A DNA stretch of 64,000 nt from Ramazzottius varieornatus (GCA_001949185.1 BDGG01000001.1:1422263-1486262), one strand, 5' to 3'; shown: positions 2 to 53,556, counted from the stretch's first letter. The notes: generated from the letters alone by a model not told the origin. Translations and numbers: made by a program.

Positions 2-766
2 TATGGCGGGAAATGCGCTAAAGGCTATGGAGGAAAAGGAGGCCGTGGTAGCGCTGGGCGGGGGAAGGACGGTATGGGCCACCCCGGTACTATGGTAGGC
101 TGCAAAAGGGCTGCCGGAAACAGAGATGCCACCGGGAACCCAGGTGAAACGGTGGACAAGACGGTGGATATGCAGCTTAACGCTCGTTTGGAACCAGGTG
201 GTGGAATAGCGGACCTCGGCAATGTTACACTGCCCGCCATCACTAATCAAACCTTCAAAAGTGCGCCGAAAGCAGTAAGTCAACAGCCGGATGACTCGTC
301 AATCAACACAGAAGACGGCAACCAAAAGAACGTAGCAGGAAACACGCAGAGCGAAGGGAATGTAACCTCCACAGAGAGTCAGAAGACGGCCAAACAAAAT
401 GTTGATGTTTCTCTACAAAATAAGACTGAGGAGAGGAATGAAAGACAAAAGTTTCTTTCCACGTTGGACGAACATTCGCTCGGAACATTGCCAGAACCAG
501 CAAAGCAACAAGAAGAAACCAGCGTTTCCCTGCTACCTATGACGACAACTCCAAGTAATTTAACAGTCGAAGCCAAACTGGGAGTCGATGGTACTTCGGC
601 TCTCACCACAAGCACGAAGGACAGACACGAAATTTTCACGACTATAAGTGGGGATGGGGAAGTTAAGATTAGTGATGAGTCCCAAAAAGTTCAGTCAGCT
701 ACTCCCAATACTGAAACCAGCACCGCCGTCGCAGTTACCACAAGCGTTACCACCAAGACAGTATAA
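2..766 (+). CDS. 3' part of a low-complexity Gly-rich then Thr/Ser/Glu-rich (mucin-like/disordered) protein, 5' end outside the window
   Basis: Frame is open from base 2 (YGGKCAKGYGGKGGRGSAGRGKDG) into ORF 74..766; Thr-rich C-terminus; no recognisable domain. Confidence 0.55.
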   Translation, partial: YGGKCAKGYGGKGGRGSAGRGKDGMGHPGTMVGCKRAAGNRDATGNPGETVDKTVDMQLNARLEPGGGIADLGNVTLPAITNQTFKSAPKAVSQQPDDSSINTEDGNQKNVAGNTQSEGNVTSTESQKTAKQNVDVSLQNKTEERNERQKFLSTLDEHSLGTLPEPAKQQEETSVSLLPMTTTPSNLTVEAKLGVDGTSALTTSTKDRHEIFTTISGDGEVKISDESQKVQSATPNTETSTAVAVTTSVTTKTV

Positions 767-1070
767 GGCTTTGGTGCTGGTGTGGACGTGGCTTGGCCAT
801 TCTTTTGTTTCTGTTTCATGATTTTGAATGTTTCGTTTGAGATTCGAGCTCCAACCGGTCCAAAGGACTATCTTCCGTGGAAACGACTGCCTTGTTATTG
901 AATTGTGTGGACAAGTCGGACTAAAAGCCGAGAGACTAACTGACGAGAAAACAACTTCTGTACATGAGGACAAAATACTCCACGACACGTATCAGTGAAA
1001 CTGCCGGCAAAACGTCAACGGAACCGGTGTGAAGGTTGAACACTAAGTAGGGCGATTACATTTGGCGTTT

Positions 1071-3062
1071 TCAATGACCAAAAAGCGAAGGATGTATGAA
1101 TTCTTTAGAACCTGAGATCGACGATAACGAAGCAGCGTAGAAAGATTTCTGCCGGTTTCGACGGTAGGTTACAACCATGTAGATGATCATGGCCAAGAGA
1201 ACAATGAAAAAGCAAGCGGAAACGATGGCTAGGATGATGGCGATCAGCTGGTAGGAAGACTCACAGGGCGTCACATATGTTGGGTGATAGAGTACCGATG
1301 CGTCTGCAAGCAATAACGAACTTCGGTGGGCAACGCAATGGTTAGCATGCGTAGGCTTTGGCTTACTCTGAGAGGTACCGCGAGCTCGAAGAGACTTTCC
1401 GGTGATGAGCTTTTCCGGTTCTTCGTCAAGAATAACCAGGGTGTTCCCGATGCTTTGGCTCGGTACGGAAGCCGTAATCTGTGTGGCTTCTCGCTTACGT
1501 TTTCCGTAGGACTTCACACCCGAACAGTCAACCTACGAAAAGGGAAATTCGTGGCACAAATTCTTTTCAGTGGGTGAATAGCTGCCTGGCTCTTACCGGT
1601 ATGCACGAATCGACACAGTAATCAATCGTGCATTGATAAAAAACTTGGAACGACTTCCTAAATCGAAATGCCAGAAATTGGGTCTCCAAAGCGGAGCCGT
1701 TCTTTTGAAGTTGGGGAAAGACTTCCGGGTGGATGGGACAGCCTTTACCGTCGATCAAGTCGAGAGACTCGGACGGGTTTTCGCCTTGAGCCTTGCAGTT
1801 CCTTGCAAAGATACCGTAGGGACCTGTAAACGATATGACATTATATGATCGGTGGTTCTCGACGAATATTCAGATGACTACGGTGAATAATAAGCAATAC
1901 TATACAAACGATGAATATGAAAGTATCTCACTTGCGCGGCTGAGTTCGACGCGGAAGACCATATTGTCGCCGACACGTGCCACGTTGACATCATTGGCAT
2001 CCAAGTTGATCAGCCGGATGACCGGATCGGGTCGTGGAACCTTCAAGTTCATTTCCAATGGAGTAATTTGGTCAATCTCCATCGGCTTGTGGCTGATTTC
2101 CAGATCGCTTAAGTCGTATTGACAACTGATTTTAAAACGACGATCCCTTCTCGTTACCTAAACGATTACCAAAATCCATTAAGGCTTGCAGTATTCACCC
2201 AAAGTAAGAAAACGTTGTAGAAAAAAGGGACGAGACTCTTTTGGCCATCGCACACTTACAATCAGGTCATCCCACTGGATGATAATCACGTTCTCGTATA
2301 ATCCGTTGCCCTGTGAAATATGAATATTTGCTAGGCAAATTTACAAGCTGAAGTAAGGTGGACACTGAAATAAGAATTTTGGATGGTGTACAGAGTCGCA
2401 AGCTTACGATGTATTTGGTTCCACAGGCTCCTTGCAAGGGAATTTCCAACGAGAAGTTTCGCTGCTTAGACAAGTCAAGCTGGCAAGTCTTATCGAAAAC
2501 GCCTTCCGGGTATACCAAGCCAGAGAATGGCTCGGTTGATTGACCTTGAACGACAATACGATCCGGTCCGCATTCGAAAGCCACTAAGGAAACAAACACC
2601 TAGGATAATAAATCATTCACAGCGCAGAATTCAATGTGGATGTGACGACTAACATTCCATACATCCTTCCCGAGATTTCTCGTAATAATTAAAGTTTTGT
2701 ATCAGTCCATTGTCATCGAAGAGTGCCGGTTGAGTCCTGCGGTTGTAGACCGAGAGCAAACACTCAGTGTTGCCCGCCGATGTAATTCCAAAACTGAAGG
2801 ACTGACAAGATCCGGCTGCAATACACTTATCCTGACAGTCAAGATCCGACACATTGGCGAAACTCTGGAAGGCGAAGGTGGCTTTAATTCGACCCAGGAG
2901 CCGGGTGAAGCTGACGCATTCGTCAGCTGATGGATCCGATAGTTCGTGTGTTAGAGGAGTGCCTGTTTGGTTTGTAATGGTGTCGGCTTCGGCAAGAAAG
3001 ATGAGGCAGAGAGTCGGAAGGAGAACGGCATACTCCACGTCCAGAAGCCTGCGCTTCAGCAT
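1071..3062 (-). CDS. PAN/Apple + ZP domain type I membrane protein (cuticlin/dusky/NompA-like), multi-exon
   Basis: ATG at 3062 with signal peptide (AVLLPTLCLIFLAEA); PAN Cys pattern (DCQDKC..CQSFSF..CLLS..NYYEK..C); intron 2653-2584 joins to ZP-N start CMELAFECGPDRIVV..PFSGLVY; ZP-C motifs IDGKGCP and FLAFRF..VFYQCTIDYCVDSC; furin site KRKR, TM helix and short tail in ORF 1071..1517. Confidence 0.9.
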
Positions 3063-4871
3063 TCTCAAGTTCTCCGGATGTTCCGTAAAAAATCTGGGTC
3101 GAGTTGAATGCTGGCAAAGGCGGATGTTATCGACGACCGGTGAGAGTTGTTCTCCGTAGCGGTGCCGGAAGCTTGGTGGTAAAAGCCGACGTCCAACTTC
3201 GACCTTGCAATAGTGAAAAGATGCGCAGTGACCAAGGGTGAATGTCTGCACTAAAAATGGCCGATGGGGATTTTTGTCAGCTGCAAAAACTAGAAGCTAA
3301 AAGATGAGCTCGAGACCCTGAAGATGCAGCAGAGCTAACTGGCCTATTGTACGCAGCTGCTATGATGAGAACGCGGAGAAGAATGTGCCATTACGGAAGT
3401 GCTACCCTATATCATTGTACTGCTTTTTCATCCGCTTCTTTTGTCCGTATTTTAGCGTACATTCTGAGCGATCAACCTTTTTCGGAACACTTTGTAGCCC
3501 TTGAAAATATTCAAACATATCCTTGAGCTCGGTATTGTGAGCAAGGTAGCATATTACCATCATCACGTCACGCTTTGCATACTTGGCATACTCAGACATT
3601 ATCTTCCGCATACATCAACTCATCGTCCAAAAGCTAAACTTGAAAAATTTCAGCGATAACCATCTGCACCCAAAAGAGCGAACCGTGCAATCCGATCCGT
3701 TACCTTTCATTTTGTTTTTTTTTCAGGGTGAAACTTACCCTGACGTTTGCCTATTCTCGACGATCTTTGATACGCCACTCTTCGGGGAACTGAATCAGAT
3801 CTCCATCTGAAGTGGCGAAGATTCTCATTGTTGCTGGCTGAAAGTGTGCGCCACTTGGGAAAGCGGTCAAGTTCAGTTCATTTCCCGACGTCTCACACTG
3901 TACTTAGCTTGTTGCATGGGCTTTTTGTATAGGTGTATAGGATGTTCAGAAGTCTATACACCTATGCAGAATTATATAGCCTTTTTTTAATGGGGAGTGT
4001 GCTGGAAAATATGCATGTTTTCTCCACAGTGGCAAGATAGATATCAATGGGCTTGTGAATGACCGGTGGACATTGCGTGCCGCTCACACTGAGTGGTGCC
4101 TGCTTTCCATCTCGTATCCACCGGATCTCGATGACTGCAATGAAAAGGTACAAGAATGCCCTGTCATAACGGGCCATATGATTAATATGCGACACATGAC
4201 ACCCGCTTGTATTCAACTTGTCCATAACACCTCTAATCAGCCCGTCTCCGAGTTTACCGACAGACGCAAAACGAATACCGGTTTAATGGACAGAGTGTAA
4301 CGGAGAGAAAGCGACAGTAGAATCACATTAGTATGCCATCGTTAAAGATATCATAAGTCAAGGCCGCTAGCGTTCGATGCGCTCAATAAATTTATCTGAA
4401 GCTCGAATGTACTGTATAAGTTTGTGTCAAATATAGCCTTCTGATACTCTGAGCCACACTATCTGGAACTTTCACTTCAACCAAGAAGGTATCATTTTTT
4501 TGCGTTGTGGACAAAAGAGGCTGAACAGGATCGTTATTCCAAGCAGTACAAACTTTCAGCTAACCACAATAGATACGTGCGCCACTTGAGATGGTTCAAG
4601 ACAATATGGCCCAAGTCCCATGTTTCAGCCTCCGACTGTATGTCAGTGAAAACCTTTCTCACGCAGCCACACTTGGACAACCACAACACAAACAATAGAA
4701 ATGAGCGAAAAAGCAACCAAATTTGTGCCTTGTCAGTTTGAACTAATCGGTGAGTCCGAGACGAACTCCTAGAAAGCAGAAAACAATTTCGGAAGACAAA
4801 CGGGAGATAGGTCGTAGAAAAGGCATAACGAGTATTGCGACTTGAACATCAAGGAGCTTATCGAAGTTAAC

Positions 4872-46600: not shown

Positions 46601-48002
46601 CTGCTCGAGGGTACTTTAGGGACTTGGTATTGCGACGACGACGGTGGTGGTCGTTTGCTTTCCTGTGCAGTGACTGCATCATAGGAATTAGATGGACACC
46701 AAAAGCGAGATCACAAGTGCGATATGTCAGGTAGAGGACGGCCACATAATTAGATTGCCATGAGCGAAGAAAGCGAAGGACAGCAGGTTGGACAGCATGC
46801 CAGACATTATGGCATCAATCGCAGGGCAGGTGAAGCTTTTTGTGATTTTGAGTGCGGTATGTTGGGGAGGGTAGACGTTACAAAAACAGAATCGAGGGTT
46901 TACAATGGTCGAGGACAATGGTACTTCAACCGTAGCTAAAAAATTTAGAAGTTACAGTATTATACACTGACCTTCAACCTGACCATTGTGATGTCGCAGT
47001 CTAATTATTTCTGCCTTCCAGGTCGGCACAAATCAGTACAGGCTGACAACGAGGAGCAGAATTATTTCAAGGTGAAGAATCTATCAACGCACTTGTATTA
47101 AAAGTGGCAATTCCTGATGTTTGCATTTTTCTACTGTTTTTCCACAAGATCAAGTTTGTTATTTGAGCATGGAAAAAATCATTTTCATGTTTCAAGTTCT
47201 TTCTTGCTTGTAGGATATCATCAGTCAACTGTCAACGGCAGAGCCATATCAGTCTCCGGCTGTGCCCTCCATCCGTCGTTCGGTGTCCGAAGACTTCAGC
47301 TCCAACTATAGCCCCGCAAGCTATGTGTCGCGTTCCATATCCTTCGTTAACACAGTCGAGTCCGTCTCCGAAGTACCCGACGAACCTTCGCTCGAAATCG
47401 TCCGGGCCGAAGTACACAACCGTTCCTACAGTTCCTCCACCTCTGAGACCGAAAGCGACTCGACGTGTTCCGCCACGTCCGTGTCGGCCAGTCCATCCAG
47501 TACATCTTCTTACAAGTCCTTTTCCTCATCGGACAATTCATTCTCCTCCGTTAACTCTTCTCCCGAAATCTTCAGTCCGAAAGCCATCGAACGCGAAGCA
47601 AAGGTTGATCTGGAAGGCCCCCAAACAGAAAGTCGACCAAAGCCGGCGTATGAGCGGACCCAGTCTTTGGCCGTAGTGACGTCGCAGCCGGCACCGGTGG
47701 TACGTCGTTCCATGCTGGACGTCCTGTCATATCCGCGAACAACACGGCCTCGTACGGTTCAGACTTGGTATGTTCCTACGACGAATAACAATGACACCGT
47801 TAAATCGACTGCGCCATCAATCTCATCCAGCTCTTCAAAAGTGGCGCACTTGCTCAAGTCATTCGACAATCATCGAAATGTCGTCAAGGATCCTTCATCA
47901 GTCAACCCACCCTTGTACAAATCTAGCGCAACAATGAGTATGACGCCGAAGTACTCTAGACAAACGTCGTTGACGACTGCGCCTGAAACTCGCCTCACAG
48001 CG
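43645..48002 (+). CDS. Calponin-homology (type 2) protein of the MICAL-like/EHBP1 group, 5' portion; exons 43645-43796, 44779-44827, 45350-45460, 46022-46055, 47022-47071, 47214-48002
   Basis: [79 protein letters not shown]; all introns GT-AG and in phase; Ser-rich exon ends at a gtaagg donor (or reads on to a stop at 48044). Confidence 0.88.
45520..45770. repeat. Three tandem copies of the dispersed AAGTGGCGCA-N27-TGCGCCACTT palindrome (further copies at 3810, 4541, 25698, 35063, 35459, 38842)
   Basis: Cores at 45543-45588, 45620-45666 and 45703-45749, inside an intron of the CH-domain gene. Confidence 0.8.
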
Positions 48003-48652
48003 GTAAGGAAAGATAGATCAATTCGAGCACAAGTGACAATTTGAACGACATGGAATCATGGATTTTTGATTTACGAGGCCTCTAAAATTCGGCTTTGTTA
48101 TTTTTTGCAGCACATCTGAAGAAAACCACACCACCACGCCGTTCCGTCCTTCTCATACGTAGATGAAAAGATGATTGATAGTCGTTATAATCGGACCAAT
48201 CAAATTTGTCATGGTTTTTCCTGAGCTTTAGATCTTTTGAAAATTTTCCGATCGTGTGCTGTATCTTCAAATACAATACTAAATTAGAGTAACTAAGATC
48301 TAATATCTATACTGTAGGGAGTAACGTGCATGTGGGAATTTCGTGGTTGTTGTTGTTGAGTTCGTCCTTCTTCAAAACTGTATCGGGTGCTGCCACCTCG
48401 TGGTTATACGCTCGGCTATGAATCCCTATAAGAAATTCGATCTCTAGCAATGGGCTGTCCTGTAAGCAATTAAAAACTGCGCTGAACCGAAATCTCTTCG
48501 CTCTATTTACTTGGCCTTGTGTGGTAAAGATTCGTGCAAGAACTGACTAGCGACAAGAGCAACAACCTTCTTACCACAAGTCTCTGTAGACAACGGGCAG
48601 GGTGCCAGTGCTTAATTTTGGGAAGGACGTCCTTCCTACTTATTCCGGGGGA

Positions 48653-49453
48653 ATGAACGCGCGACGTTTTACATCGATTCTGGTAATGAGTGCTTCATGT
48701 TGTTTCATCGTTTTTGGAGACCCTTATAGAACACCAGACGGGTACAAACTACCGTATCAACTTCAGGTTCAGCCTTTGTTTTTCAACGGAGGAGCGTATC
48801 CGGGTGCGCCAGTTGGTACACCAATTGGTTACGCACCACAGCCTCTGTACAACACATCTGAGCCGTACCGAATTCCAACAAACTATACCATCAACATCCC
48901 TGGACTCTCTCCATTTTCCGTAGCCAATCCATATGGCTACTATCTGCCGCCGATTGTGGTGGTAGTGCGAGAAAAAGGTGCGGTGTATTCGACTCCTACC
49001 TCGCCCACCACCAGGTCGAAGACAACCACTACGAGGTAAACGTTACAATTCGGGCGGGTCAGTTTTCCCGTCATAATTCGGGCGGCTCGAAAAGTTGATA
49101 CGTTATTCGCCACGCTGTATTGATTGATCACCGTACGTCGGTTGATACAACTTTAGGCTTTTTAACATTGCGCATACCCCTCTTCCTCCCACCGCTGACT
49201 CCGCGACTCTTTGACATCTTTGGATCTTTCAACCTATCACGAGAGATAGAAGAGAGGATGTTCTACCCTGGGAAGAAAAAACTAGGCAGTTTGGAGCAGA
49301 AACAGCTGAGATACAGACCGCCCAAATTGTGACTGGAAAACTGGCTCGCCCGAATTGTGACGTTTACCTCGTAGGTCGAACACAACCGCCAGAGCGCCAC
49401 CTGGAATGGGCCATCGCTTTTACACCAGGTCGAAATGGCGGAAGTCGCGGTGA
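48653..49453 (+). CDS. Small secreted Pro/Tyr/Thr-rich protein; predicted exons 48653-49035 and 49375-49453 (153 aa)
   Basis: Signal-peptide-like start; the TTRSKT/TTRSNT repeat continues across the MITE; unspliced ORF stops at 49039 inside the MITE. Confidence 0.7.
49032..49371. mobile_element. Tc1/mariner-like MITE, 340 bp, 54-bp TIRs, TA target-site duplication
   Basis: TIRs 49032-49085 and 49318-49371 (6 mismatches in 54 bp), starting CGAGGTAAACG; TA at 49030-49031 and 49372-49373. Confidence 0.92.
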
Positions 49454-49916
49454 GAATCTGCTGGACTATTGGACAGTATGCTCAACGGTCCTTCACACCT
49501 TGACACGCTTTTGCTGCAAACAGCCTTTGTATCTTTCGTTAACACTGCGTTTCTTTGAAAAACATACTTTGGGACATTAATATTGGCGCTTTCCGACATG
49601 TGTGAGAAAAGAGTAACTTTTTTACGACTGACAGCTCAAAAACAATCTTTTTTTTCTGCGCAACAACATGCTTACGACCGACTTGGCAATGTCAGGACTT
49701 GTCTTAACGCACTAGCAAGACGTACATGAAGCGTAATACCTTTTACAACGACCCGTAACTTCTTTCCGAAAACATGCCAACAGTGTGATAAAAGGCTTTG
49801 AAAACAGATTACAAAATAAATTTACAGTTTATGAAAGCAAAGCGACCCGTTACACTCCATCAAAGCGCAACGCCTGTATAAACTGTACACAATACTCCAC
49901 TTCCGCGATGACGTCA

Positions 49917-52502
49917 TCATCCACACAATGAATGGTAAAATCTCCTCCATGCCGGTAAATTTGCATGCGCGGCTCGTTCTTTTGCCAGTATCCGATCCAA
50001 GTCCAGTTCTCTTCGTCCAGTGACCAGATCGATGGTCTCTGTCTTGAAGAACCCATCTGGGTTGCCTTTTCCCGCTACCATGAAGGGTGTCTTCTTCAGC
50101 AGCTTCCAGAAAATGTAGAACACAAGGACGATCGGCGCGGCCAAGTAAGCGTTGAAAAAGCTTTCCGCTGTGGCTGTTTCGCCAATAGGTTTCACCGCAA
50201 CGTAGAACTGCGCAAGAAGAATGAGCACGTTGAAGATCACGCCCCACCACGAGCCGATGACCCCAAAGGCGGCTCTGAACGGTAACTCATCCAGGGTATG
50301 GCCTTGAACTCGCCAGGCGCGGCGGAAACGCAGATGAGCCCAGCAGATGGACATCCAAGTGAAGATGGTAGACAAACCGGAAATGGCGAGAAGCCAGCCG
50401 AAGACAAGGTCGGACGACGCTGATTCACTGATGTAGGCGAGACCGCCGAGAACGAGGGCGAGGATAATGGCGAAGAGAGGGCGTCCTTCTCGGTCGATGT
50501 AGCCCAGGAAGCGAGGAGCTTGGCCGGTGCGGGCCATGGCACACAATGTACGAGATGAACCGTAGACAGCAGAGTTTCCGACGGACATGACCGAGACAAG
50601 GATGACACCGTTGAAGATAGAGGGAAGGATTTTGATGCCGGCGATGTCGATGGCGATGACAAAGGGCGAAGCGGTAGCATCGTGGCCTGGAAAGCAGCAT
50701 CGAAGCGTTCAAGACAAAAGACCTTCATCCGCATGGAGTTGCTATCTTAGCTAATTTCGAAATGCTTCGTTGCAACCACCTTTCCGAATCGAAGTGGAAA
50801 AACGCTTCAAGTCTGCATCAAGAATAATGTTTGCGCAGTTACGTTTTTAACAGACCAAGCTGCGCAGTTCTCTACACCATACTGGACGCTTCAAAGTCAC
50901 CGTATCTTTTCTGCGTCCAGTTTGTCTAAACTGCTTAAGCTTACCAGAAGGCGCTTCCACGGTTTTATTTTGTGGCGCAGCAGCCGACTTATCCGAATCA
51001 GCGTTGTTAGCCTGGTCAAAGTGGGAGCCAAGAAGACGTGGGTGGTTGTATGGGACGATCAGGCCTACTAGGAGTAACGTCACAATATAAAAGATGGAGA
51101 TGCGCCAGAAGACCTGTTTCGTAGCTTTTGGCAAGGACTTCCTCGGGTTCTCCGATTCGGCTGCAGCCAGACCGACCATCTCCGTTCCACCGAAGGCAAA
51201 GGCCGCAGTGACGAACACCGCGCAAAAGCCTTGGAAGCCATTGTTGAAAGCACCTGGATTGGACCATGTCTTCGCCCCAAGGTATTCATGGGTTTCACGT
51301 TGAGCGGGACCGCCGCCGACGTCGATGACGATGCCCAGTACGATAAAGCCACATACTGCCAGGATCTTGATCATAGAGAAGACGAACTCGGCTTCGCCGT
51401 AGCCTTTGACGCCGAAGAAGTTGATGAAGATGACGATGAGAAGAAAGACGGTGATCCACACGCCCACGTCGATGTCTTTTGTCCAGTATTTGATGGTTAT
51501 GGCAGCTGCGGTGAGTTCGAGAGGAAGAACGACCAGCCATTGCAGAGCGTAGTTCCAACCTAAATGAAAATCACACTCAGAATTTGCATCTATATAGTTT
51601 TTTTTAGAACTCCAAATTTCTACAGCAAAATATGAGGTGGCAAACTGGAAGAGAAATATTTCGCTTACCCATTGCGAAGCCCCAGGCTGGATCGATAAAG
51701 CGGGATGAATATATCGAGAAGGAACCGGCAATCGGATAAAGCACCGCCAGTTCTCCCAAGGCCATAACGACATTAAAAAGCTAGACAAAAGACGAAATAT
51801 CATTTTTGAACTGCTTAGTCCGTCCAGGACCTTGGTAAGTAGAATCAGCGAGGAGTGACAGATTTGAACAACAAAAACAGTAAAAGTTTCGTACCATGGT
51901 ACCGATGAGAATAAAGCCGATCAGCAGGGAAGCCGGGCCTCCGTTTGCCAGCACGCCACCTGACCCGATGAATAACCCTGTACCGATGGCCCCACCCTTC
52001 AAAAAAGCGCCATTAAATTACCGCTCATTGCTTTATGACTAAATTATGCTCCAGTCGTCCGACCACATCCCTCTCGTCAACAGTAGTTCTAAGAATAATT
52101 GGCGAGCGGACAAGAACTTACGAAGGCGATCATCTGGATGTGGCGGTTCTTCAGCGTTCGTTTCAGCTCAGGACCATGTCCGCCGGGAAGAGGCTCCTTC
52201 TCTGAGTCGCCGGGCTTGTAATTTCCACTAACTGGTCCATGACTCTCTTCCATCGGCTTGAAGGAGTCGATGTAACGTCGCCAAAAAGGTTTCTTGACAT
52301 GATCGTACTGCAGAAAACAGGCACGGCTCTCGCAACGCATCTTGTCTAGGGTCCGAATCTTACGAATTTCACTGATTCCAACGTCCCGAGTTTTAAAGTT
52401 GGCCAGCTCCTGAACTGTCGCTCGGTAGTTTTTGACACTTACCTTCGGGGAATCGTCGGAGAACTTTTCCTTTTTCACTTCGGACATCTCCATCGCGGCC
52501 AT
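49917..52502 (-). CDS. Fungal-type amino-acid permease (APC superfamily, YAT/GAP1-like), 6 coding exons
   Basis: LKRTLKNRHIQMIAF|GGAIGTGLFIGSG, ALGELAV.YP.AGSF..Y.SRFIDPAWGFAMGWNY, FGVKGYGEAEF, AAFAFGGTEMVGLAAAE.ENPRK.LP.ATKQVFWRI, SPFVIA, GNSAVYGSSRTL; five GT-AG introns in phase. Confidence 0.95.
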
Positions 52503-53556
52503 CTGGAAAGGGCGAAGATACTGTCCAAACGACACCGCGGAAACGAGCGACGAACAGCAGCAATAATAATGGAGTCGATGGAAATCAAAACGGTTGAGGG
52601 ACGATACGCAACGATATCAGTGCCGCTCGAGTTATGAATCCAAACTAAAGTCTTCGGCTCATCTTTAAAGCAGAATCAGCCGCCACGCTGCGTAAGAATA
52701 AAATATATGTGAAGAAGAATATTATTATTGTTAAACACTGCGGAAAGTGAAACTCGTTCAAACGTGACGCTTGATCGGAGAAGCAACACAAGCGATGGGC
52801 AAGCTACGCTATGACCGCCAATATTTTATTAAAATATCAAGCCAAGTGCAAACCCAGCTCAGCAAAGATTAAACGAAGTGCAATGATGAAGAGCGAGTGT
52901 TAAGCCTGAAAAAAGACCTTCAGACTGACGCATGTTTTGTCTGTTGGATAGACACCAGGATGTATACGGTCTTTCTCTTTGTGCTCGAGGCTACGCCGAG
53001 TAGGCCGTATGCCAGAATGATAGTGACACTTTCGTGCTCTTGTATTGAAGAAAGTATTTTCGTCATTCAGCAAAATTACAGCTTTGTCAGGGAGCCACTT
53101 CTTCGAATAAAATGACCGACATGGTGCTGTCGCATTGTTTTTGTAAGCCACGATACATCTTTACACATCCAGGTTCGTTGAATCGAACGGAATCATACAT
53201 TTTGAAAACTCGATCCATCCCGATAGCTGAAGGCTGGATTACCTTGTGATCTAATATTGTTTCGGCAGCCCAATTTCTGGAACATTGACTAATAACACGA
53301 TTGTTCATGGAACGGTTTTGAAGTTTTGCCTCCCCAGGGGCAATCTTCAACTGCTAATGCGATCTAGTATAATAAACATGAGCAACCAGAGTCTGACATT
53401 CATTTGGCCGTCTGACCAGTCGTCAGTTGGCTACGTCGGGAAAGTCTGAATCCGAAGTCGTATCGGTCAAATATTCGAAGCTGTTTTCTATAGTTGCAAA
53501 ACGAATCGTGGCTCGTTCGAAAGAGGTTGGAAATTGTATAAGCAGTAGCGAAGAGC

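Follow-up and report, generated by a model that had tools for sequence, protein, structure and literature searches.

A pogo-like MITE inserted in a tardigrade gene and probably spliced out as an intron

The host gene and the element inserted in it

The window, by which we mean the whole stretch of 64,000 nucleotides of the Ramazzottius varieornatus genome that was analyzed (GCA_001949185.1 BDGG01000001.1:1422263-1486262), carries on its + strand a small gene into which a short transposon has been inserted. The 5' untranslated part of exon 1 spans positions 48561–48652 (+ strand); its start is approximate, with the RNA-like contigs beginning at 48561, 48591 and 48567 in runs X1, X2 and X7, respectively. 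Translation defines the coding part of exon 1 as 48653–49035 (+ strand), the last four bases of which, CGAG, are derived from the transposon, and the coding part of exon 2 as 49375–49453 (+ strand), which provides 25 codons for a conserved basic tail (PPGMGHRFYTRSKWRKSR) followed by the TGA at 49451–49453. When read without splicing, the ORF starting with the ATG at 48653 comprises 128 codons, enters the element and stops at the TAA at 49037–49039. Directly upstream of the gene lies a Ser-rich ORF (47262–48044). A fungal-type amino-acid permease gene with at least three exons (window positions 49917–52535, − strand) converges on the MITE-bearing gene, and because the X1 contig that contains the spliced junction continues for 804 nt past position 49800, the two genes probably overlap at their 3' ends.

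The product of exon 1 begins with a hydrophobic, signal-like N-terminus, continues with a conserved domain rich in Pro, Tyr and Gly, and ends in a Thr-rich linker; judging from its sequence, the protein is probably secreted. It did not match any Pfam family, and an exhaustive profile search returned only five relatives, one from Hypsibius exemplaris and the others unnamed proteins of ~145 aa (two from Logan assemblies, one from ENA and one from NCBI). The gene family looks tardigrade-specific. The Hypsibius relative corresponds to the C-terminal ~115 residues (816–928) of OQV15185.1 (P0019), a protein of 929 aa annotated as 'MICAL-like protein 2', which is most likely a fused gene model and is the only form in which this relative is known. 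For R. varieornatus itself, no database protein of 70–222 aa was found for the host gene, which probably either lacks an annotation or is part of a fused model, as is the case in Hypsibius. All relatives are organized alike: the conserved Pro/Tyr/Gly-rich domain is followed by a variable linker rich in Thr and, at the very C-terminus, by a basic tail. The part encoded by exon 1 is 71% identical to P0001 and 54% identical to residues 816–891 of OQV15185.1. The tail, for which the alignment of the relatives gives the consensus PPGxxHRFFxxSxWRK, is conserved in four other tardigrade homologues. Compared with the C-terminus of P0001, the tail encoded by exon 2 shows 82% identity over its last 17 residues, and compared with that of the Hypsibius protein it shows 67% identity. 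Considering that in the window this tail is encoded only 3' of the element (49376–49450), synthesis of a normal protein depends on a frame-preserving removal of the element. The empty site was sought in two places: a genome search showed the host gene to be single-copy and yielded no paralogue with such a site, and a metagenome scan for orthologous genomic DNA gave no match.

The inserted element is 340 bp long (49032–49371) and has no ORF of its own. Its inverted arms, at 49029–49085 and 49318–49374, are 57 nt in length and 89% complementary when the flanking CTA and TAG are counted in; excluding these, the terminal inverted repeats (TIRs) measure 54 nt each, the left one extending from 49032 to 49085 (+ strand) and the right one from 49318 to 49371 (+ strand). 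A 25-nt TIR pattern is found at exactly two sites in the window, one in either arm, compared with an expectation of 0 from shuffled sequences. TA is present at both ends of the window copy, as it is in other copies, and represents a target-site duplication with its left half at 49030–49031 and its right half at 49372–49373. Each arm is built from two direct copies of a motif of ~16–20 nt that lie 28 nt apart (49041–49060 and 49069–49088 for the left TIR), and these paired copies are probable candidates for transposase-binding sites. The arms, the duplication and the genome copies described below bear out what the initial annotation had proposed from the window, namely a 340-bp element with 54-bp TIRs and a TA duplication inside an ORF, and its arithmetic with respect to the frame, the stops, the added codon and the 25 further codons proved correct throughout.

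The transposon family and the splice signals in its ends

The TIR of the window copy is shared by two long elements, L041 (2796 bp) and L042 (1994 bp). L041, located at C1:2646783-2649578 (484–3279 in the cut-out segment), has perfect TIRs and a TA duplication, and 25 of the 25 terminal bases of L042 are the same as in the window copy. An HTH_psq-like N-terminus (E = 1.4e-3, 18.8 bits, under the Pfam cut-off of 20.4) and a DDE_1 core (E = 5e-4, 20.1 bits, under the Pfam cut-off of 22) were recognized in L041, and a DDE_1 match that is likewise sub-threshold in Pfam (E = 0.01) in L042; both elements also have a typical pogo-like C-terminal stretch. Database relatives of the transposase piece are named 'DDE-1 domain-containing' or 'HTH psq-type domain-containing', two of them carrying PF05225 or PF03184, and the core piece of the L041 transposase matches at least 139 places in the genome. 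The TA duplication places the element in the Tc1/mariner superfamily. Within it, the sub-threshold HTH_psq and DDE_1 pieces of the TIR-sharing elements, which agree with one another, together with the DDE-1 and psq names of their relatives, suggest that the window element is a non-autonomous pogo-like MITE and not a mariner-like one, as had been proposed initially. The autonomous mariner that was expected to share the TIR did not emerge either: the ten best PF01359 (Transposase_1) loci in the genome all lack the TIR within 1.5 kb, and on these ten loci a mariner-proper partner was rejected in favor of the pogo-like elements. The L041 transposase is spread over at least four open pieces (906–1133, 1160–1837, 1985–2185 and 2416–2955), which could be due to either introns within the gene or decay. 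As the coding pieces of both L041 and L042 appear to be split or decayed, the present autonomy of the two elements is only putative.

A whole-genome search identified five further copies of the window element at 90–96% identity and about six at 80–83%, as well as a large related subfamily that has only the first 160 nt in common with it, at 70–77% identity. The exact 12-mer TACGAGGTAAAC occurs 283 times in the genome, compared with 9 occurrences of reversed control patterns, and the 26-nt TIR, allowing for up to 3 mismatches, occurs 403 times genome-wide, compared with 0 for the reversed control, giving a genome total of about 280–400 such termini. Nearly all of the about 50 copies that were cut out have TA at both ends. 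At 9 of its 340 sites, the window copy departs from the majority sequence of its subfamily of six copies, indicating that the insertion is not very recent. At two of the loci, L076 (C7:1195123-1199123) and L079 (C7:1878219-1882219), a 3.7-kb segment is present twice, 98.6% identical, inverted and ~683 kb apart; each side holds the same 626-bp element of the MITE family, and the sequence comparison identifies the pair as a segmental duplication, not two insertions.

The end conserved in the family, CGAG/GTAAAC (here and below, the slash denotes the cut), agrees well with a 5' splice site, and because the two ends are inverted copies of each other, the same signals are presented in either orientation. 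Beyond the element itself, all that is required is that the TA be followed by a G on the coding strand. Among the 283 exact termini, the outer flank gives such a TA-G acceptor at 74 (26%), which is about the background rate; a preference of the family for TA-G targets is thereby ruled out, and the family does not aim at such sites. The commonest outer flank base of these 283 ends is G, not C.

These numbers bear on the question of whether the window copy is one of many introns of the same origin. A survey published in 2022 scored Ramazzottius_varieornatus as aquatic and without introners (Gozashti et al. 2022, supplementary table, PMC9860276), and reported introners in only two animal groups (PMC9860276). 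If the MITE copies acted as introns elsewhere, they would constitute a full introner family, and R. varieornatus would be an introner-bearing species that the survey overlooked, which we regard as unlikely. Such an extension would be consistent with the identical donor in every copy and with the TA-G acceptor at a quarter of the ends; in addition, the copies examined with their flanks represent about a third of the family, and a host gene that lacks a database protein of the size given above could have escaped an annotation-based survey. The analysis of the flanks points the other way. ORF continuity across the in-silico splice was followed on both strands in about 50 copies, a set enriched for TA-G ends. 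Because L076 and L079 are the two sides of an inverted duplication, the set comprises 49 independent copies with 1.5–2 kb flanks, and only the window copy has a convincing splice-restored ORF, with a long protein-like frame of 148 + 26 codons. By this criterion of ORF continuity, which is blind to short exons, no second copy within a CDS was convincing among the 49; the spans of the others lie within chance and look non-coding. Several copies in CDS would be expected if TA-G insertions into coding sequence were neutral in a genome that, on a rough estimate, we take to be compact and to have a large coding share. The absence of a preference for TA-G targets also speaks against a full introner family. 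A coding score based on codon usage (trained on 48 long ORFs) was dropped, as it did not separate coding sequence from random open windows.

One further copy, L003, was considered as a second intron and rejected, as it is located only 2 codons upstream of the stop of a possible ORF of 105 codons, for which no splicing is required. Two copies of the related 340-bp subfamily, L061 (C5:947503-951503) and L024 (C2:3844749-3847909), both on the − strand, are located directly upstream of ORFs of 206 and 184 codons, respectively, and may be part of promoters or 5' UTRs; in L061, a TA-G end points toward the ORF. The initial annotation had described the family as pre-adapted to creating introns, a notion that holds for the signals, which are found in every copy, but not for the flank they need, which is available at only 74 of 283 ends, nor for further coding copies, none of which appeared among the 49. 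What stands is one intron-creating insertion from a family of which every copy has the potential, with the introner status of the family being that of a candidate only.

The RNA junction and its likely origin

To examine the junction, contigs of four runs from four sources were aligned to positions 48300–49800; the RNA status of the runs is the guess of the tool, and assembled contigs hide minor isoforms, strand and amounts. Runs X1, X2 and X7, from studies P1, P2 and P3, respectively, each have one joint at which 339 nt are skipped (49036–49374, + strand). Shifting the cut by 2 places to the right gives the joint GT..AG ends, and the shorter side of the aligned contig extends over 214–255 nt. 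The removal of exactly this segment had been predicted from the DNA, with the junction to be looked up in RNA, and is now found in the contigs of three runs from three studies, with the tail frame conserved. The X1 and X2 contigs have 0 differences from the reference, no contig of these two runs crosses the interior of the element, and the intergenic region upstream is uncovered (48478–48560 in X1 and 48484–48590 in X2), as would be expected of RNA. In X18, one unbroken contig runs from 48300 to 49231, into the element, and thus behaves like DNA or unspliced RNA; it shows that nucleic acid from this same organism contains the element.

Run X7 bears the same organism label, but its contigs differ from the reference at 18 of 467 nt in exon 1 and 9 of 232 nt upstream, ~3–4% overall, with a 2-nt insertion behind 48517 (compared over 48300–49586), and X7 must come from a distinct strain or a sibling species. 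The substitutions comprise 4 synonymous and 7 conservative non-synonymous changes, which are too few to judge selection. Considering that the junction in X7 is the same as in X1 and X2, the element, or at least its three-base scar, must be older than the split of X7. A 237-nt contig of X7 over the element interior may represent a retained intron or another copy of the element.

Comparison of the spliced mRNA, ACC ACT ACG AG/G TCG, with the empty site, ACC ACT AGG TCG, reveals that the two differ by the addition of CGA. The removal of 339 nt restores the frame at the expense of one gained codon (ACG, encoding Thr, in the Thr-rich linker), after which 25 codons follow up to the TGA at 49451–49453.

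The best explanation of these observations, which we consider probable, is that the MITE insertion became an intron that is excised by the spliceosome. A non-autonomous pogo-like MITE would have integrated into the Thr-rich linker at a C-TA-G site and duplicated the TA. Its conserved end CGAG/GTAAAC, within the left TIR and cut after 49035, would then serve as the 5' splice site, and the other end, GTTTACCTCG, would be completed by the duplicated TA and the host G to give a 3' splice site that is rich in pyrimidines and ends in TAG/ (acceptor at 49372–49374, + strand). In the sequence, the insertion supplies the donor from the left TIR and the acceptor as CCTCG plus the TA of the duplication and the G of the host, matching the RNA junction. 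A TGAC within the right TIR, upstream of the pyrimidine run, is the candidate branch site. We infer that the spliceosome takes out 339 of the 342 added bases, leaving the CGA as one Thr codon and restoring the frame into the tail. The added Thr would be harmless, and the splice signals are probably a by-product of a TIR sequence maintained for transposition, as opposed to an adaptation that serves the creation of introns. Read by eye, an intron of the neighboring permease gene extends from ~50944 to 50690 (G/GTAAGC...TTTCCAG/G), and its donor indicates that GTAA donors are normal here.

An alternative is offered by SOS splicing, by which DNA transposons are taken out of C. elegans and human mRNAs independently of the spliceosome (Zhao et al., Nature 2025, PMC12779559). 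It is triggered by the pairing of inverted repeats and needs AKAP17A, CAAP1 and the ligase RTCB; the cut sites are multiple, lie near the ITR ends, are rarely GU-AG and leave variable indels (PMC12779559). In the present case, an RTCB-ligase-dependent reaction would excise the element, and the GT..AG ends would be coincidental or belong to the dominant in-frame isoform, owing to which the insertion could persist. The trigger is present, as TIRs of 54–57 nt, the length of those in Tc1, with a predicted near-perfect stem lie in an exon of an animal gene. In the predicted fold of the pre-mRNA, a TIR helix of ~57 bp pairs both splice sites (MFE −148.9 kcal/mol, z = −10.4); sites locked in such a helix would be unusual for spliceosomal splicing and exactly what triggers SOS splicing. 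Both cuts are no more than 4 nt from the TIR termini, where SOS sites fall, and an insertion within a poorly conserved linker is the setting in which SOS splicing rescues function. The genome encodes a protein with a CAAP1 domain (C1:2281763-2281942, 58 bits) and an RtcB ligase (C19:80794-82668, in five exon-like pieces).

In view of the form of the junction, SOS splicing, the most serious of the rival explanations, is nevertheless an improbable source of the joint. A single junction is seen in three runs and two lineages, as opposed to the many sites and variable indels of SOS splicing, and it uses the sole GT..AG pair within ~10 nt of the ends, with a good AG/GTAA donor and a pyrimidine-rich acceptor. 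Scattered excision at non-GU-AG sites was not observed in the three runs, in contigs that drop rare variants. The designation of the intron as spliceosomal in the initial annotation can be maintained as the best reading, with which the GT..AG ends and their context are consistent, with SOS splicing (PMC12779559) remaining as the rival.

Excision by the spliceosome is also to be preferred over an artefact or an event at the DNA level. That the 339-nt gap results from a jump of reverse transcriptase across the hairpin, at whose foot the junction is flanked by direct repeats of 4 nt (AGGT), or from a DNA allele (ACTACGAGGTCG) or somatic excision without the element, is very improbable: the 4-nt microhomology at the junction, the very stable hairpin and the guessed RNA status of the runs would fit, but X1 and X2 have no contig over the loop of ~230 nt, although unspliced RNA in a random-primed library should still yield coverage there, the junction is identical across three studies, a jump at the foot of the stem is expected at the TA/CTA repeats and would give the empty site (342 nt, not 339), the footprints of Tc1/mariner-type excision retain both TAs while only one is present here, and the conserved exon 2 tail is in frame only after exactly this removal.

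Comparison with known systems and implications

Removal of exonic DNA transposons through splice sites in their termini was reportedly described by Wessler and colleagues between 1987 and 1992 for the maize elements Ds and dSpm, which were spliced from waxy, adh1 and bronze transcripts, and this is said to have been proposed as a route to new introns. The tardigrade locus resembles these cases in that an exonic DNA transposon is removed via splice sites in its termini; in contrast, the maize examples are plant laboratory alleles with several alternative, often imprecise junctions, and involve hAT and CACTA elements. Removal of Tc elements from C. elegans mRNAs was reportedly the subject of earlier work by Rushforth and Anderson in 1996. 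Like the removal of Tc1, Tc3 and Tc4 in that species (PMC12779559), the present case concerns an element of the Tc1/mariner superfamily with inverted repeats of ~54 nt and a TA duplication in an animal exon, which is excised near its termini with a minor, in-frame alteration where the protein is poorly conserved. It differs by its single canonical GT..AG junction in two diverged lineages, and so behaves like a fixed and precise intron as opposed to the heterogeneous repair of a recent insertion.

A further animal example is provided by the MITE-derived introns of Fritillaria borealis (Henriet et al. 2019, via PMC11282704). According to that account, these introns share with the present one the animal host, the origin from a MITE and a pairing of the TIRs that joins the intron ends. 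The same account describes them as having non-canonical ends (AG-AC, AG-AT), numbering in the thousands and needing an altered spliceosome (PMC11282704), unlike the standard GT..AG ends and the single case found here.

The closest parallels in mechanism come from algae, where one splice site is provided by the introner and the other by the duplication (PMC11282704, PMC9860276); cases in which the mRNA is lengthened by one or more codons have been described as well (PMC9860276). The tardigrade element is similar to the introners of Micromonas pusilla and Aureococcus anophagefferens and to DNA-type introners (PMC9860276, PMC11282704) in being a short non-autonomous transposon with TIRs and a target-site duplication that brings one splice site along and obtains the other from the duplication and the host. 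[quoted passage not shown] Moreover, introners are defined by families of many similar introns, whereas one intron copy was found here. None of the papers searched ties introners, or intron gain from transposons, to tardigrades. What is new in the present case is therefore the host and the type of element, a pogo-like, TA-duplicating MITE in a tardigrade; the mechanism is already known from algae.

The origin of new spliceosomal introns in animals is poorly documented. The locus described here provides a clean and datable animal case, in which the transposon family of origin, the target site, the scar of one codon and the junction in RNA can all be seen, and in which the relatives of the gene identify the spliced frame as the functional one. 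It stands at the junction of two ideas, introners on the one hand and SOS splicing of inverted-repeat transposons on the other. It is conceivable, though unlikely, that the locus represents a fixed intermediate, in which tolerance of the SOS type came first and was followed by the precise use of the TIR donor and the TA acceptor, and that this and other MITE families made further introns that were missed by annotation-based surveys. If this were true, tardigrades would be the third animal lineage with active transposon-driven intron gain.
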